Shown: piece after piece, positions 11,064-63,727 of the stretch
How positions within the stretch are numbered: position 1 is the first letter of the stretch
How the letters are laid out: every line of letters begins with the position of its first letter
DNA from: Haliotis rubra
Taxonomy: Eukaryota
Assembly (NCBI RefSeq): GCF_003918875.1
Contig: NW_025765603.1
Coordinates: 992,001 to 1,056,000, forward strand
Length of the DNA stretch: 64,000 nucleotides
Direction of reading: 5' to 3'
The notes under the pieces: generated by a model
The model's database searches: none
The model's input: only the letters and a program-made list of their open reading frames with translations
Told to the model about the DNA's origin: nothing
Program-made: the position numbers and the translations under genes

Positions 11064-11217
11064 ATGTTTGGGAGACGTACCCCTCTCGCCATGACACAAC
11101 CGAGTGTCAGCAATGGCGTGTCCTGCTGTGAGAAGCCAACACTTGTTAATGAGATCGAAGCCACGACTGTCACCGTTGAAAGCGACACAACTTACATTAA
11201 CAGACTTACTCACAAAG
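11064..11217 (+). CDS. STAND-ankyrin paralog P1, first coding exon (start codon plus conserved N-terminal motif)
   Basis: ATG at 11064 with in-frame stops upstream. Encodes MFGRRTPLAMTQPSVSNGVSCCEKPTLVNEIEATTVTVESDTTYINRLTHK. Ends at a phase-1 AAG/GCAAGT donor. Homologous to exons at 41992-42114 and 63587-63727. Confidence 0.8.
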
Positions 11218-11482
11218 GCAAGTAGTGTCCTTGTAGTGCATGAAGAAAAGAATTCATAGAATTGTAGTGATGCAGCTGTGTATTCACTTTCCCACATCAT
11301 GAAGATCTCAAGGAGGGACTTCCTACTTCGGCCAGGGGAGCTGTTGTTGTTTGTTGGCAGTATTACAGCTAAATGACGGCGGTAGTTTCAAAATAATCAA
11401 CAGCAAAACCTCTATCCTTAACAGCAAACAATGATTTGTGTTGTGAAGGATTACTGTAATGGACAAGAATATTTTTCTGGTA

Positions 11483-11715
11483 GACCCGTGAAGAACCAGG
11501 TTAGAATTTGTCTTCAGTAACCCATGCTTGTCGTAAGTGGCGACTAACGGCATCGAGTGGTCAGGCTCGCTGACTTGGTTGACACATGCCATCGTATCCC
11601 AATTGCGGAGATCGATGTTCATGATCACTGGATTGTCTGGTCCAGATTCGATTATTTACAGATCGCCGCCATATAGCTGGAATATTGCTGAGTGCTTTGT
11701 TAAACAACAAACGAA
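11483..11715 (+). mobile_element. family B SINE-like element
   Basis: Same body as 4902-5149. Confidence 0.85.
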
Positions 11716-12835
11716 CCATCTATTACATCAGTCACGAAAAGCAGCGATGCTCTGAGGCTTCATGACTCCATTAAAACATATTATCTGCATACATTCAATT
11801 TGAAATTATAAAGTCTAATGAGAAAAAGAAATAGACTTCACTCATAGTATCCATGTGGAGAATCGAACTTGGACCTACAGCGCGACGAGCAGACGCTTTA
11901 ACCATTCGGCTACCACCTTCACGTTAAAAGATTCTTGAGTTAAGGCTAACCGCACAGTCAGCATCAGAAGGCCTATGTAAAGATCGGTCGGGGAGTAGCC
12001 CAGTGGTTAAAGAGTTGCTTCGTCTCGCCGAAGACCCAGGTTCGATTCTCCACATGGGTACAATGTCCCCTGCCGTGATATTGCTGGAATATTGCTAACT
12101 ACGGGGTAAACCCCAACTCACTCACTCACTCACTCACTCACTCACTCACTCACTCATTCGTTCTGAATCGCCCGCCTCAGTCAAGGTGTAAACGTTGAGC
12201 TAGTCCGTCCTGAAAGAGACTCTCTGGGTTAATTTAAATGACAAAACAAAATATCTTTCTGTGTGCTCGCAGTGTTCAGGTATTTTGATGTGCGTTCTTG
12301 CTGAGTTGAAGACATACAATAATCCTGGTGGGCCAGTGACACCTGACGTGGTATTGACATGACGCACATATATAAATCATATTTCAATTATTAAAGGAGG
12401 CATTTTAAAATGCAGCAGGTGTTCAGCAGGTGAGTTGAGTTTCAGTCAGATCGTGTCCCACGCCCGGGGAGGACACCGGCATTATTTGTGTTGACAAAGG
12501 AGAGGCCACGAAGTTCTTGTGAATTTTCCTTCAGTGAAACGTAGCAAGTTTGCGATTTCACACATGTAAGGGCAGCATTTGTGTTTTCTGTTTCTCATCG
12601 CCCGACCGACCCTTCTAATTGTATTGCCGACAAAAAACAACAACAACAACAACAAAAACAAAAAACTTGAAACATTGACAATTATATTTCCGTGCTGGTT
12701 TTTTTATTCAGACTCACTGTCTACATGATGTAGAGTGCGATAGTAGTGTTCTGCATACACACTTGGCGTCATCACTTTATAATAGTGATTCATAGTCACA
12801 TGTTCAGACTCTAGTAAATGGTGGGGTGTGTGGGG

Positions 12836-13002
12836 GGGGAGGTTGGTTTAAGCCTAATGGTTAAAGCGTTGGCTCGTCACGCCGAAGACCCGGGTTCGAA
12901 TCCCCACATGGGTACAATGTGTGAAGCCCATTTCTGGTGTCCCCCGCCGTGATGTTGCTGGAATATTGCTGAAAGCGGCGTAAAACCAACCTCAGTCAGT
13001 CA
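12836..13002 (+). mobile_element. family A SINE
   Basis: Full head and tail; TSD TCTAGTAAATGGT. Confidence 0.85.
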
Positions 13003-13752
13003 GTCTAGTAAATGGTACAGTCGACTCTGCTTTTGGAAACGGACAGGGCTTTCTCGTTTCTTATACAGTGGTTGATTTGTATCTCGATGTTAGTGGGTTG
13101 CACTATTTTCACTGTCGTTGAGGGAATATAAATTGCATTTAACCCGGTTCGAGTTTCTCAAAAGTATGGGGAAAAGATTCAGCTGAATTTGGAAATGATT
13201 AATATGTTAGATTAATTACAACACAGAAAGAGGGAACTGATGCAAATTATATGCATCTATGTATGTAGGTATCAAACGTATGTCAAATACTGGTTGACAC
13301 ATGTCACCGTATCCCAATTGCGTAGATCGATGCTCATGTTGTTGATCACTGGATTGTCGGGTCCAATATGGCGGCGGTCTGTAAATAATCGAGTCTGAAA
13401 CAGACAATCCAGTGATCAACATTATGAGCAACGTTCTACGCTTCTGGGATACGATGACATGTGTCAACCAAATCAACGAACCTGACCCCCCGATCCCGTT
13501 AGGCACCAATTCTAACCCCGATCTTCACGGGTTCTGGAGAGGAGGACCTTACTGTGTATTGCAAGAACATTACGTGAAGGTACGCGCTTGTGAACATTTC
13601 CTTGACTTTTCAGTCCGCGCTTGTGAACATTTCCTTGAACTCGCCAGCCATACCAGACGAATGATTCTCGTAAAGTATTATGCGTATGTTAGAACGAAAA
13701 TAATGAAAATTATGAAAATATTTATGTTCATGGTTGGACTTTTTGTGCGCAG

Positions 13753-13797
13753 GTCGTAGCCAACCAGACAGCCCGTCTCAATTTGAAAACATCGTCC
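13753..13797 (+). CDS. STAND-ankyrin P1, 45-nt phase 1-1 micro-exon
   Basis: gtgcgcag acceptor, gtaagt donor; (G)RSQPDSPSQFENIV(L). Homologous micro-exons in P2 and P3. Confidence 0.82.
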
Positions 13798-14285
13798 GTA
13801 AGTATGCAGTGGATGAGTGAGTGAGTTTGAGCCTCTTTCAACAGTATTATTGTTCAATCGCGGCCTGTCCTCTTGGTGTTGGAGGAAGGAGAATCAAGTC
13901 TTACACGTTTACCATTATGGTGAAATCCATGGTCCCGACAAACCAAGAAACATCATGGACAACACCAGGGTTGGAATACCAAGGGGCGCAACTCTGCATA
14001 GCGAATTGCGGTGTTCCAAACGACAAGGCCACCTCTGGCCTCACCCACAAAATATGATAAGTACTAGATTGATTTCGATTTTAGTATTTTACCTTGATAT
14101 GTATATCTGCAAACAAAAACGAATGCATTTCAACAGAAACAATGACGATCTTAAAATTCCAGCAATATGACAGCGGGGGACACCAGAAATGGGCTTCATA
14201 CGTTCTACGCATGTGGAGAATTGAACCCAGATCTTTAGCGGACGCTTTAACCTTTAGGCTACCCCCACCATCCCTTAATGCCGTG

Positions 14286-14455
14286 AGGGCGGTGGGGTAG
14301 CCTAATGGTTAAAGCGTTGGCTCGTCACGCCGAAGACCCGGGTTTGATTCCCCACATGGGCACAATGTTTGAAGCCCATTTCTGGTGTCCCCCGCCGTGA
14401 TATTGCTGGAATATTGCTAAAAGCTGCGTAAAACTAAACTCGGTCAGTCAGTCAG
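14286..14455 (+). mobile_element. family A SINE
   Basis: Full head and tail; TSD CCTTAATGC(C/G)GTGA. Confidence 0.85.
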
Positions 14456-14752
14456 CCTTAATGCGGTGAATCACGAACATCTGGCAAAGCCTCGTGCCTC
14501 CTCTGATCACCCTCTTTACTGTACTTCACTGTCACCCTTGTTATACAAAAGATATTTTAGTGAGAGTTATACCCCTTGTCTACCTACCCTGGGACTCTTA
14601 ACGTTATTCACGTGAGTCAAGTCAGTTGTCACGTGACAAGGACTGCACCAGTCAGAACTTTTTAAAAAGTAAAAACTGACCAATTAAATTTTATGACAAG
14701 AAGTGTTAAATCATCATATTTCTTTTCCAAGTGAGCTTTTTCAACATTTCAG

Positions 14753-17661
14753 TTTCAACGTGGAAGCGTATCAAGCTCCTAGAGTCTAAACCGCATGTTT
14801 CAACTCGAGCTGAGCGATCAGCCCAGCACCTACTGAACCAAACTGGATTAGTTTTCATAGAAGGAAAGTCTGGCTCTGGTAAAACAACATTAGGGCTTCG
14901 GATCCTGTCACATACTGCAAAAGAATATGACAGGGTACCAGTGGTGTTATCAGCGTGGCAGCAATGGGATTGTATCCCCAAGGAACTCCCGAAGAAGGAA
15001 GAAGAACGTGAAAGCCCGAGTCGTCATAAATATGTAGTTTTGATTGACGACATTTACGGCGCTAGCAACAAAGATCCTAAACAAATAGAGAACTGTGAGA
15101 GATATTTTCATATGATGTGGCCCCAAGCCAAGTCTGGACATGTTTTGTTCGTCATGACTTCCAGAACAGAGATAGCTGCGTTGTGCCAGAGACAACTGGT
15201 GGAGTATGAAGTCACGAAGAATGCAAAGTTCATCAATCTCGACGATCGCAGGTATTCCCTTACCGAAAATGAGAAAAAGAAAATGCTTACACGAATATGC
15301 AACTTGAATGTTGGCGACTTTAAGCTGACTGAAATAGTCCGCGCGGATGCTTCCCTTGGGTTTCCCCAGTGTTGTGATTTTTATGCCAACAGCAGGGCGG
15401 CAAGGCAGAAAGGGGTCGACTTTTTCCACCATCCCCATGAGTTCATCATTGAGGAGATAGACAAAATGCAGGAATATGATGGTACAGGATACCTGGTCCT
15501 ATTAACGGTCTTGATGAGCTCGGGCTGCTTGGAGGACAAACAAGCACAGGCAATCGATGGTCCTCTAAAATCTCTCATCAATTCGTTGAAAGAATGTTGT
15601 GTCAATGTACCACAAGAATTAACCCTTTATGACTTCCATGAAAAGGCTCAGTCTTTGTGTGGTGTGTATTTAAGCCACACCGGATGTGGGTATGGCTTTC
15701 AACATCAGTCTATCTTTGATTCTGTCTTTATCAGTATTTCAAGGAAGTATCTAGACATATGCATTGAGTCATGTCCTGCAAACATGCTAGTGGGGCTAGT
15801 TCGGACCCAGTCCGTAAAAGATTCATCCTCTGCAGACGAAGATACTTTACATGTAAGTCTGCCAAGAGAATACTTTGACCTACTTGCTGATCCCATTACT
15901 GACCTACTTCTGATAAGAGACTGTCCTGATGCTTGTATATTGAGTCACCCGTCACTACAAGATGAGGAATTTGTACAGCACTTAGTACAATCCTGGTCAG
16001 CAGAAACAATGATGACACTTTTATTTCAAGAACATACACCAACATCCATCTTTGTCCCACATCCACTGGAAGAAAAAGAAAATATACATCTTTTTACTTA
16101 TAACACTATGCTGGCTGCTGTCCTTTTGAGAAAGCTGAACCGTGTATTAAAGCATGTCCTAGCAAGGGTAAACAGTTCTTCAAAATATGCATCAGTTTTC
16201 CTGGCATGTGCTATCTATATGAATGATAACAACTGCGTGAAGACGTTGCTTGAGTTGGGAGTAGTTCCTGATGACGATTGCTTCAGGTCTCTCTGCCATT
16301 CCCCGTCCATAGAAGACCGCTTAACTAGAGCAATCTTTGCCCGAGTTGGAACGGACATTGAAACTATGAATGATTATGATGGCTTGTTTGGCCTTGCCGT
16401 GATACGTGGAAATACCACATTGATTAAACTTATGATGTCAAAGCTTGATGGAAATGATGACAACCTGGACATGTTCGCTAAGTATCAGGAAATGTTGTTG
16501 TCTAAACTTGGAAGGAATGAATTTCGTTCAATACATGGAAACAAGGCCTGGAAGCTTGACAGTCACGTATCACGATATTGTGATATCATTTGTGTCTTGT
16601 ATGAAACAGGCTGTACCACTGACATCAACTATCTAGTATGGTTGTCAGCTGCCCTTGAAGACCCAACCCTGCTCAGATATTTCCTACAACAACCGAATGT
16701 TAATCCGTTAAACAGGTACTTTATATCTGAGAAAAAGGTATGGAAGAAAACCACGTCTCTGCAACAAGCAGCGGCCTACGGTGGAGCAGAGTGTGTTCAG
16801 GAAATCATTGACTTCTTCATCAACAGAGGCATTACACCATCCCAGTTCCTTGGTGAAACAACGCTAACTGATTCATATTTTGACAGAGACAGCGTCCTGG
16901 GTTTAACAGTTTGGCACGACAGGTATGAGAACATGAAGCGAGTCTTAGAGGCAGGGATTGATGGAAGGAGAAGAGACGCTGAAGGGGAGACACTTTTACA
17001 CAAAGTTGCCCAGCGGATGCATCCTGAATTTGCCAAGTATCTTTTGGAATTAGGGATACCCGTGTCCGAGAGGGACAACGATGGTTGCACTGCCTTTGCG
17101 TCACTGTACTCACGGGGCATGGACCGACAATCTCTCTTTGGTACACAAAACACGCACGTTGGCTTAGTTAAGTTGCTAGTTGAATCGGGAAGTGATGTTA
17201 ATGAATTGGACAGGTATGGACGGTCGTGTCTTCAAAAGGCTGCTGAACGCGGAGACGTTGAAGCTATTGACTATTTGTGTGAAAAGGGTGCGGATCTGAA
17301 CCAGAAAGATACAGAAGGAAAATCAGTTTTACATTATGCAATAGACGAGTGTGATGTAGAGGTGTTGCGGTATCTTATCCAAAAGGGGGCCGATGTTCAT
17401 GCAGTTGATGACGAGGGAAGGAATGCCATTCACTATGCTGCAGGATCCGCTGTTCAAACTGTGGAAAAAATCAAGTATTTTAAAGACATCCATGGGATAC
17501 CTGTATCTTCTCTAGACAACGATGGTAGAACAGTTTTGTTCTATGCAACCGAGTCCCGTGATGAGGAGGTAGTTGAATTGTGTTTTGACATGGGTCTTGA
17601 TCTAAACCACGCTGGCCGAGAAGGGGCCACTCCATTACATATTGCGGTAAAAAAGTTCTAA
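14753..17661 (+). CDS. STAND-ankyrin P1, large exon: nSTAND3-type P-loop NTPase, helical region and about 9 ankyrin repeats, ending at a premature TAA (about 1035 aa with upstream exons)
   Basis: Phase-1 acceptor atttcag/TTTCAACGTGG. Walker A EGKSGSGKT, Walker B VVLIDDIYG, sensor MTSR, GxP motif LGFP, MHD-like FQHQSIFD, then ankyrin motifs TLLHKVA, SVLHYAI, TPLHIAV. Confidence 0.88.
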
Positions 17662-18510
17662 CGATCTTGATACATCTCTTGTTGATTTCTTCATACAAAA
17701 CGGTGCAGATCTGTGTGCAAAGGATACATGTGGGCGCACGCCGTTGCACTATGCAGCGAATGAAAGGGCTTGCGAAGAACTCGTGAAGATGCTTCTCGAC
17801 AGTGGCGCGCCGACCCAAGAATGGAAGATGAAGATGGTCGCACTGCATTACATTATGCAGCGAGAGTGCTAGGTGGAGGAAAGAATCTGGAGATGATCCT
17901 TCAGAAAGATGTTGATTTCGATTTGCAGGATATATACGGTAAAACCCCATTACACTACGCGGTAGTAGCATATGGTGGGGACAATAACGTGAAGCTTCTC
18001 CTTGACAGAGGTGCAGATCCTTGTGTTCGGAACAGAGATGGATGTACCCCATTTCACCTTTCAGCAAGTGTTGTAAGGTCCGAGCTCACCTTGACCCGGC
18101 TTTTGGAGAAAGGTGCACACATGAATGCAACTGACAGAGAAGGCAGAACCCCGTTGCACCGTGCTGCCAAAGGTGGCTGCAAGGACAATGTGAGGTTACT
18201 CATACAGAGAGGTGCCTGTGTCGCTGCAGAAGATGAAGAAGGTCGTTGCCCATTACATTATGCAGTAATGGAAGGTGGCGAGGAAAAGGTGAGGGTTCTC
18301 TTGAAGGAAGGGGCTGATGCTTGTGCGAGAGATAAATATGGCCGTACCCCATTACACATTGCCGCCAACCTAAGGCACTGTGACCCGAGGGTAAAGATAC
18401 TCGTTACAAAGATACTCCTTGAGAAAGGCGCTGATCCTTCTCTACCAGACAGTGATGGTCTGACTCCAAAGGATTACGCCCGAGAATCAGGTATTCAGTG
18501 TTTCCTATGA
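17647..18510 (+). pseudogene. frameshifted distal ankyrin array of P1 (about 8 repeats)
   Basis: Removing one A from the A6 run (17649-17654) gives KSSNDLDTSLVDFFIQNGADLCAKDTCGRTPLHYAANERACEELVKMLLDSG. Removing an extra GC at approx. 17804-17809 then gives ADPRMEDEDGRTALHYAA... to the stop at 18510. Confidence 0.75.
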
Positions 18511-19164
18511 GGTCATTTCTGCCCGCCACTGCATCAAAACACATATTTGTTCTGTGAAAAGAAAGGACATAACGAAAAGAAGAAACCAAAATGACATTTT
18601 CTTATTTACCATCCAGCATGTCCTGCGAACAAATATTTTTGGATGTAAAAATTGAGGTCAGATCATATTTTTCACAGTTTCTTCCTGGAATGAATTATTA
18701 TTTTGTATAACTCCTCAGCTTCACATAGATTACAGAACGATTTGTCAATCTCATTACAAACCAACTTGTGAAATGTAGTACAGTGTATACCTATGGTGGA
18801 GAAATTGTGTCAAGTGACAGTGACTCTGTGATGTTCTATTCAATGAAACATTTTTAATGGAAAATATTACCTTGTTTCAAGAATTAATATATCTGATGCA
18901 GTTCCGTGGAATCATCCGATTGACATGACAGCGTAATGGAATCCAACAATGCAGTACTGTGGGGAATCCAGGATATGACATAAAACCTATATATGATGCA
19001 TTGTTATCACATTAAACCTTTGAGTGAGTGAGTTTAGCTTTACGCTGCTTTCAGCAATATCACAGCAATATTTCGGCAGGGGACACCAGAAATGGGCTTC
19101 ACACAGTGTACCACTTGGGAGGAACCAGTCTTCAGCATGATAAGCAAAAATTTCAACCACTAAG

Positions 19165-19333
19165 CGAGCGAGCGAGCGAGTTTGGTTTTACGCCGCTTTT
19201 AGCAATATTCCAGCAACATCAAGGCGGGGGACACCAGAAATGGGCTTCACACATTGTACCCATGTGGGGAATCGAACCTGGGTCTTCGGCGTGACGAGCC
19301 AACGCTTCAACCACTAAGCAACCCCACTGCCCT
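19165..19333 (-). mobile_element. family A SINE
   Basis: Reverse complement of the family A consensus. Confidence 0.85.
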
Positions 19334-19670
19334 GTTATATAGTATGACCAGAAATTATTGAGAATTTTAGGAATATGTTTAATTGAATTTTTTCTAGTAT
19401 AAACAACCTTGACCAGCTATCAAGTGCTTGGGTTCATTCAAGAGAGACTCCGTGAATCTTTTTTCATTAGTTTGTGAAGAGTTATCCCCCTTTGTTTACT
19501 TGCTAGCAGACGACATTTTCAGTGATCCTCAGTATGGATGATTTAGAGTAGAGGAAGTTGATTTTAGAGTATTATAACAATGACATCAGATCAGCTAAAG
19601 TGATTTAAAGTAGAACAGGCATCCCTGTCCACTGTTATTGTGTTTTGAAAATTATTGCAAATGGATATGG

Positions 19671-20090: not shown

Positions 20091-20097
20091 CCATAGA

Positions 20098-36559: not shown

Positions 36560-39500
36560 TCACAAGTTTCCCTTTTCTACAAGTAACTTGACAATATCCT
36601 CTTGATGAGATAGTACGGCATAATTTAATGCTGTGCGCCCTTCATTGTCAGAAATACATGGATCAGCCCCACCATCCAGAAGTAACTTCACACTCTCTTC
36701 ACCCTGCGACATCACTGCAAGGTGTAGTGGAGTACAACCTGATTCATCCTGCACACCTGGATCAGCCCCTTTTTCCAGCAGCAGCTGTAGGGTCAGGCCA
36801 ACACTCCCTGCCCTTGCCACATAATGTAAAGGGGTGCTACCATCATTGTCCACGGCATTGTGATCCGCCCCTGAGTTCAGAAGATGCTGCACAAGCTTCT
36901 CACAATGTCTCTGATTAGCAGCATAGTGTAATGGGGTTCTTCCATGTTTATCCTTCAGATGCGGATCAACACCTTTCTCAAGCAGGAACATCACAATGGA
37001 TTCACAGCTGGGTCTCTTCTGTTGCCTGCACGCTGCATGGAGCAAGGTTGCATCCTCCATGTCTGTAGCATGAATATCCAAGCCTGCCTCAACAAGCATT
37101 TCCACTGCTTCCTCATCAGACTCTACAGCATAGAACAGGGCCGTTCTACCAGACCTGTCTGTCCCACTAGTCGCCCCGTTGTGGGCAGCTCTGAAGTATT
37201 GGAGTTTCTCTACTGTGTCTTTCCCTGACCATGCACTATAATGCATAACATTTCTGCCCCAGTCGTCCACTGCATCTACTTCAGCACCTTTGGCAATGAG
37301 GTATTTTGTTGTTTCTAAATCACAGTTTTCTGTTACCTGATGCAACACTGTTTTTCGCTCTTTGTATTTGAGATTCAGTTCTGCACCCTTATCACACAGG
37401 TATCTGACAGTCTGGATGTCACCAATCCTAGCTGCTTTCAGGATACAAGTGTTTCCATCAATATCAGACTCATTGACATCACTTCCTGCTTCCAGAAGAG
37501 CTCTGACAGTTCCAGTAGCCGATGAACAAAACTCGTTCCTGTAATACTGATCATCAGGGTATAGATACGTAAATGGTGTGGATCCTTTACCATCCGCTTC
37601 ATTTACAGAAGCTCCGTGGTCCAAGAGGATGTTGACAGCATCCAAATTCATATCCCTAGCAGCTGCATGTAACAGCGTTTCTCCAAATGTATTCCGTCTG
37701 CTCACATCAGCTCCTTGAGTGATGAGGTACGTCATACAGTCATAATTACCATATGCCAATGCTAATTCAAGTGGACTGTCATCTTCGTCTACCAATCCAT
37801 TCAAGCATTCATATATCGATATCCCTTTCTGTGTGGAATATTCAATGAGTTCATGCATGCACTCTGTACCACCAAATGCTGCTGCTTGTTGGACGGATGT
37901 GGTGTGTCTGTATAGAAGATCGGGACTTCTGAACCTCTTCAGAGGGTTGATATTCGGGTTCTGGAGGAAATATCTCAGGGCTGTCGCGTCTGGATGACAG
38001 GCTGACAGCCACACAAGGTAGCTGATGTCAGTATCACACCCTGTTGTAAACAAGGCAACAATGATATCAAAGTAGCACTTTTCCCCACTACCTGCATTCA
38101 AAGTGTGCTTTCCTTTCAAGCTTGTGCGTCCACTCGCATCCAGTAACATCACCAACTGGTTCTGGAACATGTCCATATGTTGTCCGCTTTGTTTCAGCTT
38201 TCGGACCAACAGTTGTACCAGATAGGTATTTCCATTCATAACAGCAAGACTGAACAAGTCCTCCAGATCAATCACACTTTCGATCTGGCTCTCAAGGTGC
38301 TGGTAAATATCATACGCTATGTTATTGTCACATTTTGAATGACACAGAGCCCTGAAACAGTCCACATCAGGTGTCACCCCCATCTGAATCAACTCACTGA
38401 TGATGTCGTCATCCTGAACATAAATCGCACAGGCCAAATCAGTGGATGTAAACTTAGACCTGTCTCCCATTCTTGACAGCAGCTGTTTGACTGCATGTTT
38501 GTGTTTATTTAGGATGAAGGCGGTTGACAATTTACTGTATGTAAACATATGAATTTTGTTCCATAGCAACATCGGATGTGGAATGGAAACAGTTGTTGGT
38601 TTCAAATCCTGGAGTAACAGTTTTATTAGGAGCTCATCTGTCCATGTTTCCAAAAGAAGTTGCACAAAGTCCTCATGGTGAAACGAGGGATGGTTGAGAA
38701 CCTGACTATCACCAGACACCAACAGGTTGGTTATACGACCTGCCAGCGAGGGGAAGCAGTGTTCAGGAAGACAAACAGTGTTAACAGTGTTGCCATCAGT
38801 GTCAGTTCTAACCAGCTCTATCAACATGTCAGAAGAACACACGTCTATACAAAAGCCTGGATACCTTTTGGCGAAGGTCATAAAGACAGCATCATGTACA
38901 GACTGATGCTGGAACGCGTAGCCAAGTCCAGTGCGGCGGAGGTACGTGCTGCACAACGAGTCTGCTTTGTCTTTAATATAGGAAAGAGACACATCGCCTG
39001 CCATGTGACAACACTCCTTCAAATTTGCTATAAGCGTTCCAATCTGGCATTTGATTGGATGGATCTGTCGCACATCTAACTCCCCTTTACACATCAAAGC
39101 TATCAGTAGGACCAGGTAACCAATACTGTCATTGACCTGTAGATTGTTTACCTCAGCAAGAATAAACTCGGTTGGTTGAAAGAAAAATGCAATCCCTTTC
39201 ATTTGAGCTTCCTTGCAGCCTGTAAAAAACACACAACACTGAACAAATCCAAGTGATATCTCTACCTCATCTATCCTAACAAAATCATCTTCGCTGATAT
39301 CAAGACCACATATTTTTTTCAACATGTTTCTTTTTTCATTGCTCGTTAAGGGGTACTTGTTGCCATCCATGTCCACACAGAGAGCTTTCTTCACGATGTC
39401 ATATTTCTTCATCCTGTATTTACACAAGATGGCTATCTCGGACCTGGATGTAAGGATGCAGAAGATATCTCCCGATTCAACCTGAGGCCACATGATATCA

Positions 39501-39825
39501 AAATATCTTTCACACTCTCTGATTCGATCATTATTCAAGTTGTTTGAACCATATATGTCATCAATCAACACCACAAACTTTGTTTTGTTAAATGTCTTTG
39601 GGATGAAATCCCACTGTTGCCATTCAGATATATTAACTGGTTTTCTGCCTGTTTTCCTTGAAATGTGCGACAGCAGACGTAAGGCAAGCCTGGTTTTCCC
39701 GGAGCCAGATTTCCCTTTGATGAATATTGAACCGTACTGATGAAGAAGACGGAACGCTGTTCGAGCAGAACGAGTTGAAACATACGGCTTCGCTTCAGCT
39801 TCATGAATGAGTCCCAACGTTGAAC
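36560..39825 (-). CDS. STAND-ankyrin P2, large terminal exon: nSTAND3-type NTPase plus about 13 ankyrin repeats (full protein about 1203 aa)
   Basis: Phase-1 acceptor ttttag/GTTCAACG. Walker A KGKSGSGKT, Walker B VVLIDDIYG, LTSR, LGFV, FQHQSVHD, ankyrin TPLH repeats; intact to TGA at 36560. Confidence 0.92.
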
Positions 39826-41008: not shown

Positions 41009-41520
41009 CATCCTCGATAATGGTATAAGTTACGATCACTCTCCACTATACCCTGGATGCATCTACGGCTTGGGGGGGCGATGATTTTATTACCTCCCTT
41101 GGCTGGATTTTTATCCAGTCAGGTGCCTACGCTGGAAAGTTGAGCGTACCAATCACTACTCACTTTCGCGTCTTAAATTATCTAACCATTTAAACTTGGC
41201 AACACAATTGATGCACTGGTACTCTGAAAAAAGTAGAAGGAGTTTTTTCATATATTCTTTTTAAAGTTTCAGATCCGGGAGTTTGTCTTTATTATTTCCC
41301 AAAAAATCTGAGTGGCACTGCGAACAAACCTTTGCGACTGCGGCCGCAATCTTTGTTGACACTGGCAAGCTCGGTTGTAATGGCGGCTTAGCTGATTGGC
41401 TATTGTGAGAATGCGGAGCCAGCCAAGGGAGGTAATAAAATCATCGCCCCAAGCCGTGGATGCCTCCAGGGTATAGTGGAGAGTGATCGTAACGTATACC
41501 CTGGAGATTATCGAGGGATG
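41009..41520. mobile_element. MITE with approx. 100-bp TIRs in P2 intron
   Basis: GTTACGATCACTCTCCACTATACCCTGG...GATTTTATTACCTCCCTTGGCTGG mirrored at 41419-41520. Confidence 0.85.
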
Positions 41521-41537
41521 GGTCGGGATATACTTAC

Positions 41538-41579
41538 TGACAAGGTTTTCAAATGGAGATGGACTGGACTGCTCAGTTC
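41538..41579 (-). CDS. STAND-ankyrin P2, 42-nt phase 1-1 micro-exon
   Basis: ttccccag acceptor, gtaagt donor; (G)TEQSSPSPFENLV(S). Confidence 0.82.
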
Positions 41580-41991
41580 CTGGGGAAATAAACACAATGT
41601 TACTATTTTACAACAAATTGTTGCTGGGTCAAACATTAAATTGATTTTTTGTTACAGGGGTTGTGTGACTTGTTCCCTTTGTATGATTCAGGTAAACAGT
41701 TTCAATTCAAGCCTTGAAATGTTTTTAAGTACCATTTTTTCCTCAAACACATTTTCTAGATAGAGGATCAAGAACAAAGAAGAAAAGGAGGGTAACCTCA
41801 ACCTCCAATGCTTGTTCACTCACTCACTCACTCACTCACTCACTCACTCATGCTCATCATGTTGAGATTAATATCTCAATACAGCAGCATGTATTTTCGG
41901 CGAATAACAAAGACCAAAAACACTAAATATTGTAGAAGAATTCAAAAACACACAATAGCAATTACATTGAAAGTCACACAGCACCATCTAC

Positions 41992-42114
41992 CTTGATGTT
42001 CGATAGTGTTGATGACGGAAGTCTTGCTTCTGATGGCGACATCCCTCGCCTTGATGCTGTTTATCACCACGATGTCTTCACACCCTCTGATGTTGTTGAC
42101 TGTGTGTGTACCAT
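41992..42114 (-). CDS. STAND-ankyrin P2, 123-nt phase 1-1 exon encoding the conserved N-terminal motif
   Basis: tttccttgcag acceptor, gtagat donor; (D)GTHTVNNIRGCEDIVVINSIKARDVAIRSKTSVINTIEHQ(G). Confidence 0.8.
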
Positions 42115-42665
42115 CTGCAAGGAAACAACCCCGCGGGGTATGGGTTACAAGGGTCTCAGAAGTCTACGCGGGTCGGGCTGGTGGTGTGGCTCGGTACCTA
42201 CAGGCCGCCATCATACAGCTGGAATATTGCTCAGAGTGCCTTTAAACAGCAAACAAATATAAGGACCACAGGACCACAGTTTGTTCAGACATGTCCTATG
42301 AACCAGGTTCTTTCTGTCATTGCAAGGAAAGAGTCAAAGTGAGGTCAAGAGAAAGACTTTGGAACTAATCTTATTCACATGTACTTTTGAATTTAGCTAG
42401 ATTTTCAAAATGTTCCTGACGTCTTCTTACATAAATATATAGACAAGGAACAGTCTCAAACCCGTTGGGTATCTCGTTCAAGAACATTTATTTTGCAAAC
42501 ACCTAGAAAAGTATATTCAACAAAGTGTTCTTTCTCCTGAAAACAGATTTTACCTATTTGTTTACATTCATGACTATATCATTTCATTCCTATATTTTGA
42601 ATGAAACAGCACATACTAGTATGCAGAGTTTACTAGAGACCATCTTGAATTTGTAAACTTCTTAC

Positions 42666-42846
42666 CAAGCGACATAAACGTGTTGACCGAAACATCCATG
42701 TCCTCCGGTTGACTCCGACCGGCATCAGCGCCGACACATGATGCATAGCTGTCTGGACACCAGGTGTTACAGCCAGGGGGGAGTGACTGTCTACCCCTTA
42801 TTCCCTCTACATCGTGATGCGCCATTGGTTCTTCTTTGAGAGACAT
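42666..42846 (-). CDS. STAND-ankyrin P2, first coding exon (low-complexity leader)
   Basis: ATG at 42846 with an in-frame TGA upstream; MSLKEEPMAHHDVEGIRG...VNTFMSL; phase-1 gtaaga donor compatible with the next exon. Confidence 0.68.
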
Positions 42847-53538: not shown

Positions 53539-55086
53539 ATGACAAAATTGTGAGTACCTTCTTATAATGTTGATACCTAACAGACGAATATCATGCCTTC
53601 TCTGTGTGCATGCGCACGTGCGTGCGTGTGCATGTGTGACAAATTTCATATGTCATCCTTTTGTCAACTTGTCTAGCATCAATAGTCATGGACTTTGAAC
53701 TTTTTGAAGTTTCTTGGTTGTCGTGCAAAGAGGTAAAGTACATTTGAATTGAATTAACTTTATACATTTGTCACTTACTTGGGGAAACCCAAAAATACCC
53801 CCCTTCCCGCCAACTCAGTTTTGCGAAAGAGGTTAACTTAAAAAAGAAGAAGCATATCTGACAAGCCTATCACTGCTGCTCATATATCTCCGTGTCTTTT
53901 CAGCACCTTCCGGTTGATAATTACAATATCAGCGGTAGTAGTCGGACTTCCGGTAGTGTTGTATCACTATGGAACGGTTAATGTCATCGGGATGCAAGGG
54001 AGAACCAAATTACGTCACCAATTTCAGAAACAGAACAAGTGGAATCTTACAAACGACGTGATAAAAAACAAAACAGAAGAAACCTTTAATTCTCCCAAGA
54101 CGATTCTCTGGTACTTTCCACCGAGGTATATACCCAAAAATATTACAAGCAAAGTTCCCTTACCTGCATGCCCAGAGTCGAACTGTTTCGTGACGCGAAA
54201 TAGAACATTTCTTCCAGAAAGTGATGCTGTCATATTTAACTCACAGTATATCGAAGGTGCCCTTCCCCCTCGGAAACCAGGTCAGGTGTGGATCTTCCAC
54301 AACAGCGACGTCCCATACGTGAGGGCCTACAGCACACCGTATTATAGAAAACCATGGTCTTCTTCTTTCAACTGGACTATGACTTTTAGACACGACTCGG
54401 ACATATTTCGACCCTATGGAGTACTCAGAAGAAGACAAAACATCCCTGTCAAGAACTATACCAGCATTGTTGAGAAGAAGACTGGTCTTGTAGCATGGAT
54501 GGTGAGTAATTGTGAAGACTGGAGCAAGAGACGTTCATACGTCAAGGAGCTGCAGAAGCACATCCAGGTTGATATTTATGGATTTTGTGGAAAGAGGGTT
54601 TTTAAGAGAGACAGAAATAAAGACTGGATGGCACATCTGAATGAAACGTACAAGTTTTATTTGGCATTTGAAAACAATTTCTGTCTTGATTATATCAGTG
54701 AGAAGTTCTTCAGTTACTTTAACCTTGACCTTGTGACGGTTGTTCGAGGAGGGGGAGACTACTCTCGTGATGCTCCGCCTAAAACTTACCTGAATGTGGA
54801 TAATTTCAAGTCCCCCAAAGAACTGGCTGATTACTTGTGGTTCTTGAACAACAACACTGACAGATATATCGATATCCTTAAGCGCAAGGAACAGTATTAT
54901 TATCAAAATGAGGAGTATCTTTTCTTTTTAGCAGGCTCGTGGTACCTGGAAAGTTATTACGAGCAGGAACCATTGTGTGAGTTGTGCAGGAGACTGAGAG
55001 ATATCACACACCACAGGAAAACCATTCCTGATATTTTGCCATGGTGGAAAAGGGGGCTTTGTCGAAATCCTGCTACATATATGTAA
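53539..55086 (+). CDS. alpha-1,3-fucosyltransferase (GT10), type II membrane protein, 397 aa, 2 coding exons
   Basis: Exon 53539-53549 (ATG ACA AAA TT/gtgagt) plus exon 53904-55086 (ttttcag acceptor) gives MTKFTFRLIITISAVVVGLPVVLY (TM). Motifs SDAVIF, FNWTMTFRHDSD, AWMVSNC, VDIYG and YKFYLAFENNFCLDYISEK. Confidence 0.93.
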
Positions 55087-55499: not shown

Positions 55500-56040
55500 C
55501 TATCATCCATCGACAAAACAGCAAACTAGGACCGTCAGCGTTTAAGTCGACCACATGTGACAGCTGCTAGGGAGGATACAGCCATTTTTAGACTTCATCC
55601 GTTCATATCATGTGGTGTGTTAAAAACAGAGTGGCATCCACATTGTCGATTGTCCAACAGAATGGTTCGAAATCGCCTAAACTCGGTCATGGAGCCAGGC
55701 GAGCTATCAGAGGTCCGTTGTTATCCCCAGAACACAAAGCAGCACCACTAGCATTTTGTCAAGGTTGACGTCACTGGGAGGGTCCACTGGTCGGACGAGA
55801 GTCAATTTCTGTTCACAATAAATGGCCGAGCTCGGGTTTAGTAACAGAAACACTATATATATGGACAACAGAATATCTTGGCCAGGTGTCATTGATGGTG
55901 TGGGTGCCTCTCACATGACTGTAAATTTGATCTTGTGACTACCAGACAAAATCTGAATGGACAACGACACTTCACTGACATCCTAGACACGGTTGTTGTA
56001 CCATATCTGGATGATGCTTGGAGCCACATTCCCAAAACTG
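55500..56040 (+). mobile_element. degenerate Tc1-like transposase fragment
   Basis: Peptide remnants LSNRMVRNRL and LVTTRQNLNGQRHFTDILDTVVVPYL resemble the Tc1 HTH and DDE regions. Confidence 0.6.
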
Positions 56041-56779
56041 TGTCCAGTCGCCGGGTCTCTGTCGCCTCACATGTATCAACGCAATCGGTGGTCACATCCG
56101 AAATTGGTTTGGTTAACCGAGTGTTTTCACCATCCAACGTTTAAGGCTTTTCGTTCTGTATTATGCCACTAAATATGAAATATTGATCCGACAAATGACC
56201 AAATATTATTAACATTTACACTACTATATTTGATGCATTTTACCTCTGCCTTGTTCCATATTTATGTAGGCCGACAAGCCATGTCTTGGGTCACTGAGAG
56301 AAGTCACACACTGTCTCCCTTCGTCCTGTCACGTATTTCCTTTTAGCAACACATTCTCGGGACATCAAGCATGCCCACCGAGCAATTCATCTCACTAACA
56401 TCAAACACGAACTTCTAAATATACATTGAAAGATAAAGTGATACATTTCTTTCCATATTGATACCTCTGTTAAACTGAGTCGATTGAAGGCTCCGATTAC
56501 ACCATGAGCATGTACATGGGAAGCATTGTCAAATAGCGCTGGCATCAGATGTTCGCGAATCCTGCCCAACCAGTGACACACTTGCACAGTTAAGTCAGGT
56601 GTTCTTCCGAAAAGAACATGAGAATATATCATATAATAATATCGTGCATGTAAAAAGGGACCAGCATTGAACATTTTTTAGTTATGGATGCATCAAATGG
56701 AAATGTCCTCAGCCTGGCCGAAATTAATCTCTTTAAAAACTTTACTAATGGCTTTCAAATGTTAACACCCTGATCCGTT

Positions 56780-57011
56780 GGTTGGTTGTTGTTTAACGCC
56801 ACACTCAGCAGTATTCCAGCTATAGGGCCTGTAAATAATCGAGTCTGGACCAGACAATCCAGTGATCAACAGTATGAGCATCGATCTACGCAATTGGGAT
56901 ACGATGACATGTGTCAACCAAGTCAGCGAGCCTGACCATCCGATCCGTTAGTCGCCTCTTACGGCAAGCACGGGTTACTGAAGACCAATTCTAACCTGGA
57001 TCTTCACGGGT
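56780..57011 (-). mobile_element. family B SINE-like element
   Basis: Reverse complement of the family B consensus. Confidence 0.85.
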
Positions 57012-57182
57012 GAGTGAGTGAGTGGGTGGGGTTAACACTCTGAATCTCTATTTCACGTTTATGCTCCCGTCTGAGCATAAAAATGACGATGTCATTTTAC
57101 ATTTGCTTTACATTGTCTTTTTGAAAACTTCACTCGTGCCTTCCATGTTATAACTCTGATAAAAGACACGTCTTGTTCTGGT

Positions 57183-60100
57183 TCAAGTTTGAGAATTAAA
57201 ATCCTGAAGTAACTTTACAGTAGCAGAACAGTCACTTGCTTTGATTGCATATTGCAGGGGAGTAGAACCCTCCTTGTCTTCTACTCTCGGATCAGCGCCG
57301 TTCTGTAGGAGGATTTCCACCGTACGTTTACACCTTTTGTGCCTTGCTGCATAATGTAATGGCGTCAAGCCATCATTGTCTTGTAAATTAACGTCAGCTT
57401 CCCTCTCAATGAGTACCTCAACATACGCTTCATAGCCATACTGCTCAGCTGCATAGTGTAACGGAGTACAACCACCTGCATCACGTACTAGAGGGTCAGC
57501 GCCTCTATCTAAGAGCAGCTCCATTGGCCCTGTACCACAATACTGTTTTGCAGCGTAATGTAAGGGGGTACGCCCATGCATATCTCGTGTAGACAGACCA
57601 GCATCCTTCTGCAGCAGCACCTCCATACTTTCTTCACATCCCTTCTGTGTTGCATAATGCAAAGGAATATGACCTTCTTTGTCTTGAGTACAAGGATCCG
57701 CACCTTGGTCTAGAAACAATTCAACAGTGTCCTCACAGTCGCTTTCGTCAGCTGCACAGTGTAATGGGGTGCATCCTTGGTTGTTCCGTGCATTTAAATC
57801 GGCTCCTTTTTCCAGGAGCAGCCTGGTGGTATCTCCTCCATCACTCTCTCTTGCTGCAACATGTAAGGGTGTACAGCCATCTTTATCTCGGGCATCCAGA
57901 TCAGCACCCTTTTCCAGAAGGATTTCAATGTTTTCTTCAACACCATCGTCCAATACTGCATAGTGTAGGGGAGTGCAGTTGTTGCAGTCTCTTGCATTTG
58001 GATCAGCACCTTTCTCGATCAGTAAATACAAATCTTGCCCCCTACCAGTTTGTTTGGCTAAATAGTGCAATGGAAAACACTCATTTTTATCTTGAAGGAA
58101 TTGATCAGTACCCTTTTCTAACAGAAAATTCACAATGTATGAATCAATTACTTTATATGAAAATACTTCTGAGTGAGTTTGGGTCTTTCCGCATGCAATA
58201 TGCAGGAGTGATGTTCCCTCGTTGTCTTGAGTATTGGTGTCCAATCCCATATCTACAAACAGTTCCACAACCTCCTCATCTCCAGACTCTACAGCATAGA
58301 ACAAGACTGTCCTACCTAGACTATCCTCTACATGCACGGATATGTTATGGGTGTCCTTAAAGTAAATGATTTTCTCCAGAGGGTCCATTCTTGAACTTGC
58401 AGCAAAATGAATCACATTTCTTCCACCGCTGTCTATTGCTTCGACACTGGCACCTTTAGAAACAAGATATCTGATTGTGTCCAGATCACATTTGTCTATG
58501 GCGTTGTGCAACGGTGTTCTTCCTTCTGTGTCAGTCTGGTTTAGATTTGCACTTTTCTCACACAGATATCTCATAGTGTCCACATCTCCATACCTTGCGG
58601 CCTTATGGAGACAGGTCTCGCCATTTCTGTCCTTTTCGTTGACATCACTCCCTGCCTTGGTAAGGATTTGAACTGATTCCAAATAGGATTGTTGCAGGTC
58701 TTCTTTAAAGAAGAGATCCCCAAGTGCTTCATTGTAAAGATGCGTAAAAGCTGTGAAGCCCCATTTGTCCTTATCAGACACACATGCTCCTTTTTCTAGC
58801 AGTGTTTCCAAGGTTTCAAGATGCATTGCCTCAGCAGCTCGGTGAAGCAGTGTGCTCCCCAGATAATCCCTTTGTCTTACATCAGATTCTGACTTTATAA
58901 GGTGTTTTAGGCAATTAAAATTCTCATGCTTGAAAGCTTCGTCAAATGCATTTTCTCCTTCAAAATAGTCTGAATGAGATTGTGATCGATTCAGGAACTC
59001 TGCCGGAGATATGTCCTTCTCCTTGAAATATTTCAGGAGTTTCTGCACGTTGTCTTCGCCACCATACGCTGCTGCTTCCTGTAAGGCTGTAGTTTTCCTC
59101 TCATACTTGTAATCCCTGTAAGTCTTCAAAGGATTAACATCCGGCTGTGCAAGGAAGAATCTAAGAATTGCATCATCTGGGTGGCCTGCTGACAACCACA
59201 CCAGATAACTTGTGTCACTGTGGCATCCTGTTGAAAACAATGATTGCACAACACCGAGATAACGAGAGGCGTCTTTGCCATGTCTCAAAGCAGGACTTCT
59301 TTCGGCAGGAGGTGTTCTGCCTAGATCCATCAGAAGTGTTTCCAAACACTTCTTGAACATCTTGGAGCTTTTATTTTCTTGCAGCTTGGCGACAAGCATA
59401 TCTACTGCAGGAGAATGACCAGACATCACAGCAAGGCCGAACAGATCCCCGAGATCACTTATGCTTTCCAGCTTGTTCCACACATAAGAACGGATTGCGT
59501 CAGTTATGTTTTCTTCCATACATTCAGATTGACAGTACGCCCTTAAACAGCTCTCATCAGCAACTGTTCCCATCCTAAGCAGATCCAAAGCAGCACTTGT
59601 GTCGTCTGTGTATATAGCACATGCCAAGCAGTTAGGAAGGTCGAGTGGAACATTTGTGATTCGTGTTTTGACATAGTTGAAGACATTAGCAATCTTTTTC
59701 AGAACGACAGCAGAGAAGAGTGTACAGTATGAAAACAACTGCACTGTACCTTCTATCATAAATGGGTGTGGAGAGGTTACAGTTGTGGAGTTGTGTTCCT
59801 GTTTCAGAAGACTTGTCATCTTATCACCAGTCCATGTTTCTAACAGCTGGTGCACGAATTCCTCGTGGTGGAAAGAGGGGTGGCACAGAATATCAACATA
59901 GTCTTCAGACATAAGAAGCTCTGTAATTCGACCAGCAAATGCAGGAAAATACTGGTCTGACAGACACAACATACTGTCAGATGTGTCTGTGTCTGTTAAG
60001 CTAGTTCTAACTAACTCTACCAACATGTTCGTTGGACAAATGTCAATGCATATATCAGGATACCTCTTTGAAATGCTGACGAAAACGGCGTCAAACACAG

Positions 60101-61039
60101 ACTGGTGCTGAAACTGATATCCATCGTCCGAGCAATGAAGGTACATGCCACACAGAGAGTCTGACTTCTTAGCTATGTCACAGAGTGTAAGACTGTCTGA
60201 GATATTGTTACAACATTCCCGGAGGTTGGCTATCAGTGGTTTTATTTGACATTTTAGAGGGTCAAGCTGTTCATTGCCTAAGTTCCCGCCAGTCATTAAC
60301 ACAAGCAGGAGGACCAGGTAGCCAGCACCGTCACATTCCTGTAGGATATCTACATCCTCCAGAATAAATTCATGAGGCTTTTCAAAAAAAGCAACCCCTT
60401 TCTTCTGTGCACCCTTACTATTTGCAAAATAGGTACAGCACTGGGGAAATCCAAGAGATATATCTATATCCACAATGTCATCCATATCCTTTTCATCTAT
60501 TTTGCATATTGTTTTCAACATTTTCCTTTTCTCATTTGCTGTTAAGGAATGTTTGATTCCATCCAGGTTTAAAACATGTGCTTTCTTGATGAGTTCACAC
60601 TTTTTCAACTGATGCTTACACAATGCAGATATTTCTGATCTTGATATAAATATGAACATTATGTGCCCGGTTAAAGCATGTGGCCACATCACATCAAAAT
60701 ATCTCTCACATGCTTCTACCTGTTGTGGATCAAGATTATTCGAGCCAAATATATCATCAAACAGCACAATATATCCCCCATTCAAATTGCTGTCATCATT
60801 GGATGAATTCCGGGGAATTAAATCCCACTGTTTCCATGACGACAATTTTACTGGTGTCCTTCCGGTTAACTTAGACATGTTGGACATAAGATGCAGCCCC
60901 AGCGTAGATTTTCCAGATCCAGACATTCCTTCTATGACGAGCACCTTGCATTGCTTGAGACTACGCATGGCGGACCTCCCGGCTCTGGTTGAGATGTACG
61001 GCTTTAAGGTGACGTTTGTGAGCAATAACCACGTTGAAC
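57183..61039 (-). CDS. STAND-ankyrin P3, large terminal exon: nSTAND3-type NTPase plus about 18 ankyrin repeats
   Basis: Phase-1 acceptor ttttag/GTTCAACGTGG. Walker A EGMSGSGKS, Walker B IVLFDDIFG, ISR, LGFP, FQHQSVFD, ankyrin TPLH repeats; intact to TGA at 57183. Confidence 0.92.
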
Positions 61040-61632
61040 CTAAAACATCGAATTGAGTGTTACTTTAAAACAAATATATAATTTGATATACCCTACCATC
61101 ATAATCCAAAATGTATTTAAAGGCTTGTTGTTGTCTGATTTGATTTGGTTTGGTTTGGTTTTGATATAGTTTGTTTATCTGGTTTTTTCGTCTTGTTTTG
61201 TTTGTCTTTTGGTTTGTTTTTGGTTTTTGGAGGGGATCGGAGGGGGTGGGGTATTATTTCTGTATTGGGTCGGGGTGTCTCAGGATCCGCCACTGTGTTA
61301 CCCGATTGTTTGTGTGCTCGGTGGCACATATGGACTTTCTTTTACCTTCCTCAGTTGTCATCGCCGTGTTATGTTTTAAGATATTGAGATTGTCATCGAA
61401 GAGGGACACTATGGCTGAATCCAATTTCCATGTTGTAATTGTCGCCCTATGTGAAACTCAGACATTCATCTGCCACATTAGGAACATTGCTGACACCAAC
61501 ATTCAGATACATACATGGCCTACATCCGTGCTCGTGGATTTCAACAACGTGGGCAACATCGGAGACCTGCATCACTTAGTGCTTTCCTCCATCATTAAGG
61601 TTAAACAGCGTGATGCAACTGACTACTGTTCA

Positions 61633-61885
61633 GTGAGTGAGTGAGTGAGTGAGTTTAGTTTTACGCCACACTCAGAAATATTCCAGCTATATGGCGGTGG
61701 TCTGTAAATATTCGAATCTGGACCAGACAATCCAGTGATCAACAGCATGAGCATCGATCTACACAATTGGGAACCGATGACATGTGTCAACCCAGTCAGC
61801 GTGCCTGACCACCCGATCCCGTTAGTCGCCTCTTACGACAAGCATGGGTTACTGAAGATTGATTCTAATCCGGATCTTGAGGGTC
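61633..61885 (-). mobile_element. family B SINE-like element
   Basis: Reverse complement of the family B consensus; TSD GACTACTGTTCA. Confidence 0.85.
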
Positions 61886-62292
61886 GACTACTGTTCAAAG
61901 CGGCGTTAAACCCAGCTCACTCACTCATACACTCTTGAGGGGCGGTGGGGTAGCCTAGTGGTTAAAGCGTCCGCTCGTCACACTCGTCACACTGTACATA
62001 ATGTGTGAAGCCCATTACTGGTGTCCCCATCGTGATATTGCTGGAACATTGCTAAAAGCAGCGTAAAACCATACTCACTCACTCACTCACTCACTCTTGA
62101 AGACTCAAACCCTTATTCGTTTCTCAAGAACATTTCCCTGTTAAAACAACCATAGCTGTCTTCTTTGAAACAATGAATATTTAAATGAATTCTGTTCTGT
62201 CCTCTCGGATCTGGTGACACTGGTTTCAAAATATGTACATCGCTCAGTATGCGGAGTCACAGGTTTGATCGTAATAGCCCAGAAATACTCAC

Positions 62293-62337
62293 CAACGATG
62301 TTTTCAAAGTGAGATGGGTGGGCCTCTGTAGTTCCAT
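62293..62337 (-). CDS. STAND-ankyrin P3, 45-nt phase 1-1 micro-exon
   Basis: tgtgtctacag acceptor, gtgagt donor; (D)GTTEAHPSHFENIV(G). Confidence 0.82.
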
Positions 62338-62365
62338 CTGTAGACACAAACAGGTTCAACATTTA

Positions 62366-62561
62366 CAGGGCTAACCTCTCATTACGCTCTTACAAGCGAG
62401 ATATGTTATTATAAAAGCACATAGTTATGTCTTCATACATATTTTTATCCGCGTAATCTCAAGAGAGGGAATTTATGGATAGAAATATATTTAAAAAACT
62501 AGCTACGTGCTTAAATAATAACGTCTCTCGTTTATGGGTGCGTAATGAGATGTCAACCCTG
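62366..62561. mobile_element. TA-flanked MITE (partial second copy from approx. 62755)
   Basis: TA-CAGGGCTAACCTCTCATTACGC / GCGTAATGAGATGTCAACCCTG-TA. Confidence 0.75.
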
Positions 62562-62948
62562 TAAATCTTTATCACAAAGGAAAGAAATTAAGAGTGTCAA
62601 CTTTTTTACTTTACGATGAAGACGTAAGTCTATGCTACGAAGCGAAACCAACCATCATCCCACCCAATCATCCAATCATTAAGAGCATATTTTCACTGGA
62701 ACCCAAAGTTTCATGCGTTTTCAAAAACACGTGGAATGAAATAATCTGCCTTTACAGGGCTAACATCTCATTATGCACTCACAAGCGAGAGAATTATTCT
62801 GGAATCGCGTCTTAGCTATGTTATTTCTATCAGTTTAATCACAAGGGAGAGAACTTCTAAACAGTCAAGAGTTACAGGGTGATCCGGTCTCTGTATGAAG
62901 ATGTTGCTACCGCCTACACAACTAACCCCATACATGTCTTTTAAACTC

Positions 62949-63112
62949 GGGGCTGTGGGGTAGCTTAGTGGTTAAAGCGTCACGCTGAAGACCCGGGTTC
63001 GAATCCCAACATGGGTACAATGTGTGAGCCCATTTCAGGTGTCCCCCGCCGTGATGTTCCTGGAATATTGCTAAAAGCAGCCCAAAAATAAACTCACTCA
63101 GTCAGTCAGTCG
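62949..63112 (+). mobile_element. family A SINE
   Basis: Element with TSD GTCTTTTAAACTCG. Confidence 0.85.
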
Positions 63113-63340
63113 GTCTTTTAAACTCGATTCTCAGCAATTTTGGCATGGTCATTGCTACCTGTTAACGGCAAAACATTTTCTCAGTTTATTCAAATGTGAT
63201 GTGTGATAGGAGAACAGGCGTTAATACCCTTACATTCACCAGAACCCTGAAACCTGTGTTATGTTTCAGATTTGGCACAGTGTTTCGACAACCTAAAACC
63301 GTCACAGCTTGATTATTTACATGTCGACGTAATATAGTGT

Positions 63341-63493
63341 GTGAGTGAGTTTAGTTTTACGCCACGTTTAGCAATATTCCAGCAATATCACGGCGGGTGA
63401 CACCAGAAATGGGCTTCACACATTGTACCCATGTCGGGAATCGAACCCGGGTCTTCGGTGTGACGAGCGAAAGCTTTATCCACTAAGCTACCT
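63341..63493 (-). mobile_element. family A SINE
   Basis: Reverse complement of the family A consensus. Confidence 0.82.
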
Positions 63494-63586
63494 GCTGACG
63501 TTATAATATGTAGTATATTTCTGATTACGAAAAAAACAAACAAATAGTAAAACTGACATAATAAAACCACGGAAATAGATACATAC

Positions 63587-63727
63587 CTTTGTATATGACT
63601 TTGTTGATATATGAAGTTTCAGAAGCGATGGTTGCAGTGTCGGATTGAATATCGTTTATTACCGTTGGTCTGTCACAGCTTGTGATATAATTGCTGACTG
63701 CAGATGTCGCCTCTGTTTGTGAAGTAC
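63587..63727 (-). CDS. STAND-ankyrin P3, 141-nt phase 1-1 exon encoding the conserved N-terminal motif
   Basis: actttcag acceptor, gtatgt donor; (G)TSQTEATSAVSNYITSCDRPTVINDIQSDTATIASETSYINKVIYK(D). Confidence 0.8.

Follow-up and report, generated by a model that had tools for sequence, protein, structure and literature searches.

A genus-restricted 39-residue N-terminal module on the nSTAND3-ankyrin proteins of Haliotis and its candidate role as an assembly tag

The DNA considered here, referred to below as the window, is a stretch of 64,000 nucleotides (64 kb) from Haliotis rubra (RefSeq assembly GCF_003918875.1, contig NW_025765603.1, positions 992,001 to 1,056,000). It holds three paralogous genes that encode an nSTAND3 NTPase and ankyrin repeats, one on the forward strand (G1) and two on the reverse strand (G2 and G3). 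Toward its 5' end each gene encodes a 39-residue peptide, located at 11100-11216 on the forward strand (P1) and at 41993-42109 (P2) and 63588-63704 (P3) on the reverse strand. An initial annotation of this DNA had singled these peptides out as a possible amyloid signaling motif, and all three are found exactly as it quoted them. The peptide is real and expressed, and forms an N-terminal module of an nSTAND3-NTPase/ankyrin subfamily restricted to Haliotis. The exons of the three genes are as follows, with a slash marking the splice junction where splice sites are spelled out.

G1, about 10723-10767 (+): 5' non-coding exon; an RNA contig of run X1 includes about 45 nucleotides near 10729-10773.
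G1, 10980..11217 (+): first coding exon, with an in-frame ATG at 11064, the motif at 11100-11216 and a GC donor (G/GCAAGT); the X1 contig covers 10979-11218 and the RefSeq protein P0007 maps here.
G1, 13753..13797 (+): micro-exon of 45 nucleotides, phase 1 at both ends, encoding a Pro/Ser linker and the start of the FENIV helix; splice sites cag/G and C/gtaagt; P0007 residues 53-66.
G1, 14753..17661 (+): large exon encoding the nSTAND3 NTPase, a helical middle part and ankyrin repeats, with the stop at 17659-17661; an RNA contig starts exactly at 14753.
G2, 42666..42846 (-): leader exon with the ATG at 42846, from P0001.
G2, 41992..42114 (-): motif exon of 123 nucleotides, phase 1 at both ends, with the motif at 41993-42109; from splice sites and P0001.
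G2, 41538..41579 (-): micro-exon of 42 nucleotides encoding the linker and FENLV, contained in P0001.
G2, 36560..39825 (-): large exon encoding nSTAND3 and ankyrin repeats, from Pfam.
G3, L005:10001-10280 (-): leader exon, beyond the window, from P0013.
G3, 63587..63727 (-): motif exon of 141 nucleotides, phase 1 at both ends, with the motif at 63588-63704; from P0013.
G3, 62293..62337 (-): micro-exon of 45 nucleotides encoding the linker and FENIV, contained in P0013.
G3, 57183..61039 (-): large exon encoding nSTAND3 and a long ankyrin array, from Pfam.

RefSeq models exist for all three genes. Protein searches identified G1 as P0007 (LOC124271883, 1035 residues) and G2 as P0001 (LOC124271888, 1203 residues, 100% identical), while G3 corresponds to P0013 (1439 residues). 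The bounds first proposed for the motif exons of G2 and G3 (41992-42114 and 63587-63727) are flanked by AG acceptors and GT donors and lie in phase 1 at both ends, and the claim that the motif exons are coding and spliced into the STAND mRNAs is confirmed by these three models and by RNA contigs. One detail of the proposed structure was wrong. The motif exon had been joined directly to the large exon, and this splice is rejected for G1, G2 and G3 alike, because a phase-1/phase-1 micro-exon of 42-45 nucleotides intervenes in each gene and is present in all three RefSeq proteins. For G1, 74 letters precede position 14753 in a second X1 contig, and position 13793 is covered at equal depth; the joint 11217/13753/14753 is read from contig coordinates and depths, the joint table being filled by high-copy intronic repeats, and it agrees with P0007. 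For G2, the share of the words sampled from 41500-42150 that occurs in four RNA runs is 0.14, near that of the exons alone, and in a DNA run it is 0.94.

The resulting proteins share one order of modules: the motif, a Pro/Ser-rich linker of about ten residues together with the FENIV helix (both on the micro-exon), nSTAND3, a helical middle part and the ankyrin repeats. The long open reading frames (G1 14731-17661, +; G2 36560-39817, -; G3 57183-61025, -) each lie 2-3.5 kb downstream of the motif, and their description as a STAND NTPase with ankyrin repeats is correct, with Pfam matches to nSTAND3 and then to ankyrin in every gene. PF20720 (nSTAND3) scores 62-75 bits against a cut-off of 27.2, and the Ank families reach expectation values (E) down to 1e-100. 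The P-loop and the repeat array expected of this class are both found in all three.

Two features of the gene models deserve comment. The annotated G2 leader diverges from that of H. cracherodii except over its final ~13 residues, which begin at a Met (P0001 residue 50) and are conserved. Judged from this alignment, that Met may be the true start of G2; the distance of the motif from the N-terminus would then be 13 residues, similar to that in G1. In addition, the ankyrin array of G1 is broken. The stop at 17659-17661 is followed by three further stops up to 17769, after which an open reading frame at 17770-18510 (+) is 73% identical to the last 229 residues of P0006, the H. rufescens ortholog of G1. 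Since the H. rubra model has 1035 residues and that of H. rufescens 1309, the break is explained by truncation of this allele, by decay of the tail or by an error in the assembly.

The motif was found in eight proteins that fall into four paralog groups, all of them from Haliotis (H. rubra, H. rufescens, H. cracherodii and H. asinina), and three of the four groups sit in the window. As first reported, P1, P2 and P3 align without gaps. A family hidden Markov model (HMM) scores the three motif exons at 69-78 bits and the next best of all six-frame window segments at 9 bits, and the likeness of the motifs is therefore beyond chance. The eight residues first listed as invariant hold in the three window copies, but only N5, C10, N17, I19, S28 and N34 remain so across the eight family members.

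The initial description of the motif as conserved also holds in part. Four comparisons, with dS between 0.33 and 0.58, put its ratio of nonsynonymous to synonymous substitution rates (dN/dS) at 0.32-0.48, which indicates purifying selection; that of the NTPase is 0.20-0.25. Between paralogs, identity is 31-41% in the motif, 49-57% in the NTPase and 22-27% in the leaders, while between orthologs it is 64-87% in the motif and 74-90% in the NTPase. The motif is thus constrained but ranks last in conservation among the parts of the shared coding sequence; by these comparisons it evolves faster than the enzyme core. Its low rank in conservation would fit a drifting, functionless leader that can be aligned only through recent paralogy. 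Such a leftover is nonetheless extremely improbable, as neutral drift is contradicted by the dN/dS values and by the six columns that stay invariant over four paralog groups in which the true leaders are only 22-27% identical. The phase and splice sites of the exon are, moreover, kept in all copies.

In composition the motif is rich in the beta-branched residues V, I and T (37% together) and in N (10%), with G and Q at 1.3% each. It contains three h-h-N-x-h units (h, hydrophobic) and a weak 17-residue pseudo-repeat, detected by self-comparison of the column profile (z=2.9, best of 27 offsets). An AlphaFold2 model of G1 residues 1-400, built from a 12-sequence alignment, has a mean predicted local distance difference test score (pLDDT) of 71 and shows a confident STAND-type NTPase, whose Foldseek matches (NB-ARC of NRC1/2, Apaf-1/Dark, SAMD9, Avs4, MalT and ORC/Cdc6) are those of a STAND/AAA+ fold. 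The first helix of this model (residues 61-77, pLDDT ~80) begins in the FENIV micro-exon, and it is this helix that opens the NTPase module. The motif (residues 13-51) lies below a pLDDT of 50, with a tentative hairpin between 27-33 and 44-50. A second model, of P0003 residues 1-130, is poor overall; in it N17 and N34 are each flanked by short strands, and there is no helix. Across the monomer models the pLDDT of the motif is 30-50. The motif is therefore predicted to lie outside the NTPase fold as a low-confidence, beta-prone appendage. The initial annotation had asked whether it might instead be an integral part of the NTPase domain, and AlphaFold does not place it there.

A different structural possibility is a short alpha-helical coiled coil that aids oligomerization, as in CC-type NLRs. 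When the motif profile was compared with all PDB chain sequences at E<=10, T4 fibritin alone was matched, weakly (E 0.028, 17 bits) and through two of its coiled-coil segments, over motif columns 15-35 (for instance 11142-11204 of the window), and I19, I26 and I33 do follow a seven-residue spacing. That same spacing makes it probable that the borderline fibritin match is compositional. The matching 'd' position, residue 29, is charged in all members, a 100-degree periodicity does not rise above that of shuffled sequences, beta-branched residues account for 37% of the motif, and both AlphaFold models show strands. A coiled coil, unsupported by periodicity or by AlphaFold, is accordingly highly improbable.

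The distribution of the motif bears directly on the reading first proposed, in which oligomerization of the receptor would fold the motif into a cross-beta nucleus that templates the same motif on a separate effector, in the manner of RHIM or HET-s. NLR-associated amyloid signaling is defined by the presence of a homologous motif on a separate effector, which is usually encoded by the adjacent gene (PMC5485727). A HMMER profile search over 1.84 billion cluster representatives returned four clusters, with E of 1e-13 to 1e-15, all of them in the Haliotis nSTAND3-ankyrin subfamily. No other cluster appeared up to E 0.001, leaving a gap between E 1e-10 and 1e-3. The sensitivity of this search was gauged by leaving out one paralog group at a time. 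The held-out groups scored 27-51 bits, and three of the four would pass the threshold at the size of the library, such that a partner as divergent as the paralogs would be detectable and a much more divergent copy could be missed. The expectation that the motif would recur on effectors or other protein classes was thus not borne out at this sensitivity, at which the motif is restricted to a single genus.

Searches closer to the genes gave the same result. Six-frame HMM scans detected no second copy of the motif in the window, in the 10-kb flanks of the P0003, P0004, P0005 and P0006 loci (L001 to L004) or past the end of the window beside G3 (L005), that is, around five loci in four species. 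In a collection of 5.8 billion proteins, a search for short fragments bearing the motif yielded three word candidates, none of which scored. Language-model look-alikes of P0003 residues 1-62 in the ESM Atlas reached at best a score of 0.60, far below the chance level stated for the tool, and were given no weight.

The resemblance to RHIM and HET-s proposed in the initial annotation does not survive comparison with Pfam, the PDB or the composition of the motif. A Pfam scan of the eight N-terminal segments at E<=10 returned only noise (DUF5462, FIT1_2 and an Ly-6-related family, each falling far short of its cut-off) and no family akin to RHIM or HET-s, the leader of G3 had no Pfam match, and the profile search of the PDB returned no HET-s or RIPK chain. 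GxQxG is the signature of RHIM and PP motifs. Neither an (I/V)Q(I/V)G tetrad nor a GxQxG segment, as would be required of a RHIM, PP or BASS3 motif of about 20 residues, occurs in any of the eight motif sequences. HET-s and HRAM motifs are in turn recognized by an elementary repeat of 21 residues that shares homology with the HET-s prion-forming domain, and the repeat found here is 17 residues long and weak. On sequence grounds the motif is not a homologue of RHIM or HET-s. It is like the metazoan RHIM of RIPK1, RIPK3, ZBP1 and TRIF in being a short, probably beta-forming interaction motif, the RHIM being found on animal innate-immune and cell-death proteins, and unlike it in lacking the core and in occurring on one protein class only.

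The comparison with the fungal and bacterial motifs (HRAM/HET-s with NWD2, PP, sigma and BASS) is closer in architecture. In both cases a short N-terminal motif stands in place of an effector domain and is followed by a linker and the NTPase. The placement expected of an NLR-associated amyloid motif is found, with the motif starting at residues 1-13 in P0003 to P0007, and the initial observation that no known domain precedes the NTPase holds, there being no Pfam domain upstream of nSTAND3. The Haliotis motif is likewise beta-prone, with predicted short strands around each conserved Asn, a possible pseudo-repeat and invariant Asn residues that could form ladders. It differs in that no effector with a matching motif was found, whether in the next gene or farther away, that its sequence matches none of the known families and that G and Q are nearly missing from it. 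It is also about twice as long as the usual single receptor-side unit and occurs in an animal host, within one gastropod genus. Because its key prediction, the motif on an effector, failed at the available sensitivity, the receptor-to-effector amyloid relay is unsupported and appears distinctly unlikely. A related idea makes the motif a new amyloid or prion-like assembly element, distinct from RHIM, whose templating partner is the paralogs themselves, or an effector copy too divergent or too poorly annotated for a 39-position profile; we regard this, too, as a long shot.

The output of a STAND protein is its N-terminal element, copies of which are brought together as the NTPase oligomerizes. 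By analogy with this general logic, we suggest that the 39-residue peptide is a short beta-strand interaction or assembly tag that acts as the output of these proteins, a reading to which we assign a probability of roughly one half. Oligomerization of the NTPase would cluster the N-terminal peptides, which might then self-associate, including between co-clustered paralogs; alternatively, the peptide might bind an unrelated partner domain by strand addition. Consistent with such a tag are the STAND-like fold of the NTPase model, the location of the motif outside the confident part of that fold, purifying selection, its N-terminal position and its 17-residue self-similarity.

Several observations weigh against this interpretation. 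No partner or function of the motif was seen in the analysis, and its hydrophobic periodicity is neither clearly alpha nor clearly beta. Both models assign it low confidence from shallow alignments (8-12 sequences), and its beta-prone, detached appearance could reflect ignorance rather than disorder. A strictly N-terminal position is also not required: in P0003 to P0006 the motif begins no more than six residues from the initiator Met, and in G1 it follows 12 residues, but annotated leaders of 62 and 100 residues precede it in G2 and G3. Finally, conservation is lower in the motif than elsewhere in the protein, and a loosely constrained regulatory tail would fit this as well. A tail of this kind, or a cluster of short linear motifs, would have no assembly role; it could dock on its own NTPase or ankyrin part and keep the receptor off, or it could carry sites of modification or targeting, such as the invariant Cys10 and Ser28. 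The moderate conservation, below that of the core, points in this direction, as do the isolated polar or Cys positions of the invariant residues with no contiguous core among them, the related paralogs that do without the motif and its absence from any other protein. AlphaFold, however, does not dock the motif on the NTPase module, in a model built from a shallow alignment and without the ankyrin part, and the recurrence of h-h-N-x-h units, together with the 17-residue repeat, suggests a structural element more than scattered sites. A regulatory tail is possible, if rather unlikely.

The assembly tag, if it is one, belongs to a single subfamily. Haliotis paralogs P0008 to P0012 resemble the motif-bearing proteins in their NTPase, middle part, ankyrin array and FENIV-like opening helix, with 38-41% identity over the query region, but they lack the 39-residue motif and either start at the helix or carry an unrelated long leader. 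Because the more distant paralogs P0008 to P0011 start at the FENIV-like helix without the motif, it is an add-on module of one subfamily. The proteins belong with the nSTAND3 NTPases (PF20720), as does the bacterial Avs5 (Sir2-nSTAND3-repeats). Avs5 combines an N-terminal output, an NTPase switch and a C-terminal repeat sensor, the same tripartite logic as that of the Haliotis proteins (bioRxiv 10.1101/2025.07.08.663546). The two differ in that the effector of Avs5 is an enzymatic Sir2 domain, while the Haliotis proteins have the 39-residue peptide and ankyrin repeats. An eLife paper names nSTAND1 and nSTAND2 but not nSTAND3 (PMC8195603). No paper was found in the literature on this motif or on any NLR amyloid motif of mollusks.

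The STAND-ankyrin type of protein that carries the motif is known, and what is new is the N-terminal variant. As things stand, it is an uncharacterized, lineage-specific N-terminal tag on otherwise ordinary STAND-ankyrin paralogs. Many invertebrate STAND and NLR-like proteins have no recognizable effector domain, and this subfamily offers a compact candidate for an output element: 39 residues, genus-specific, beta-prone and on its own symmetric exon. Were the motif to prove self-templating, NLR-linked amyloid signaling would reach beyond RHIM in animals.

The neighbors of the motif-bearing genes at the scanned loci include a GT10 fucosyltransferase, a C-type lectin, a TM2-domain gene and an Arf-like GTPase. 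Between G2 and G3, an intronless open reading frame of 390 residues (53914-55086, +) contains both fucosyltransferase (GT10) domains and is also called on L005. The C-type lectin gene (181 residues; L005:1000-5831) lies just past the right end of the window, upstream of G3. The fourth paralog group, that of P0003, occupies a separate locus in H. rubra (L001), H. asinina (L003) and H. cracherodii (L004), and its synteny is conserved, as a TM2-domain gene adjoins it in all three species. At the left edge of the window, an open reading frame of 287 residues (5-868, +) has no Pfam match. The introns of G1 and the DNA upstream of it are rich in very high-copy repeats (10000-10600, 11400-11800, 12000-12200, 12800-13600 and 14000-14600), where the summed contig depth is 1e4 to 1e7 in all runs compared with ~60 in unique DNA; position 14287 is the end point of hundreds of joints between repeats.

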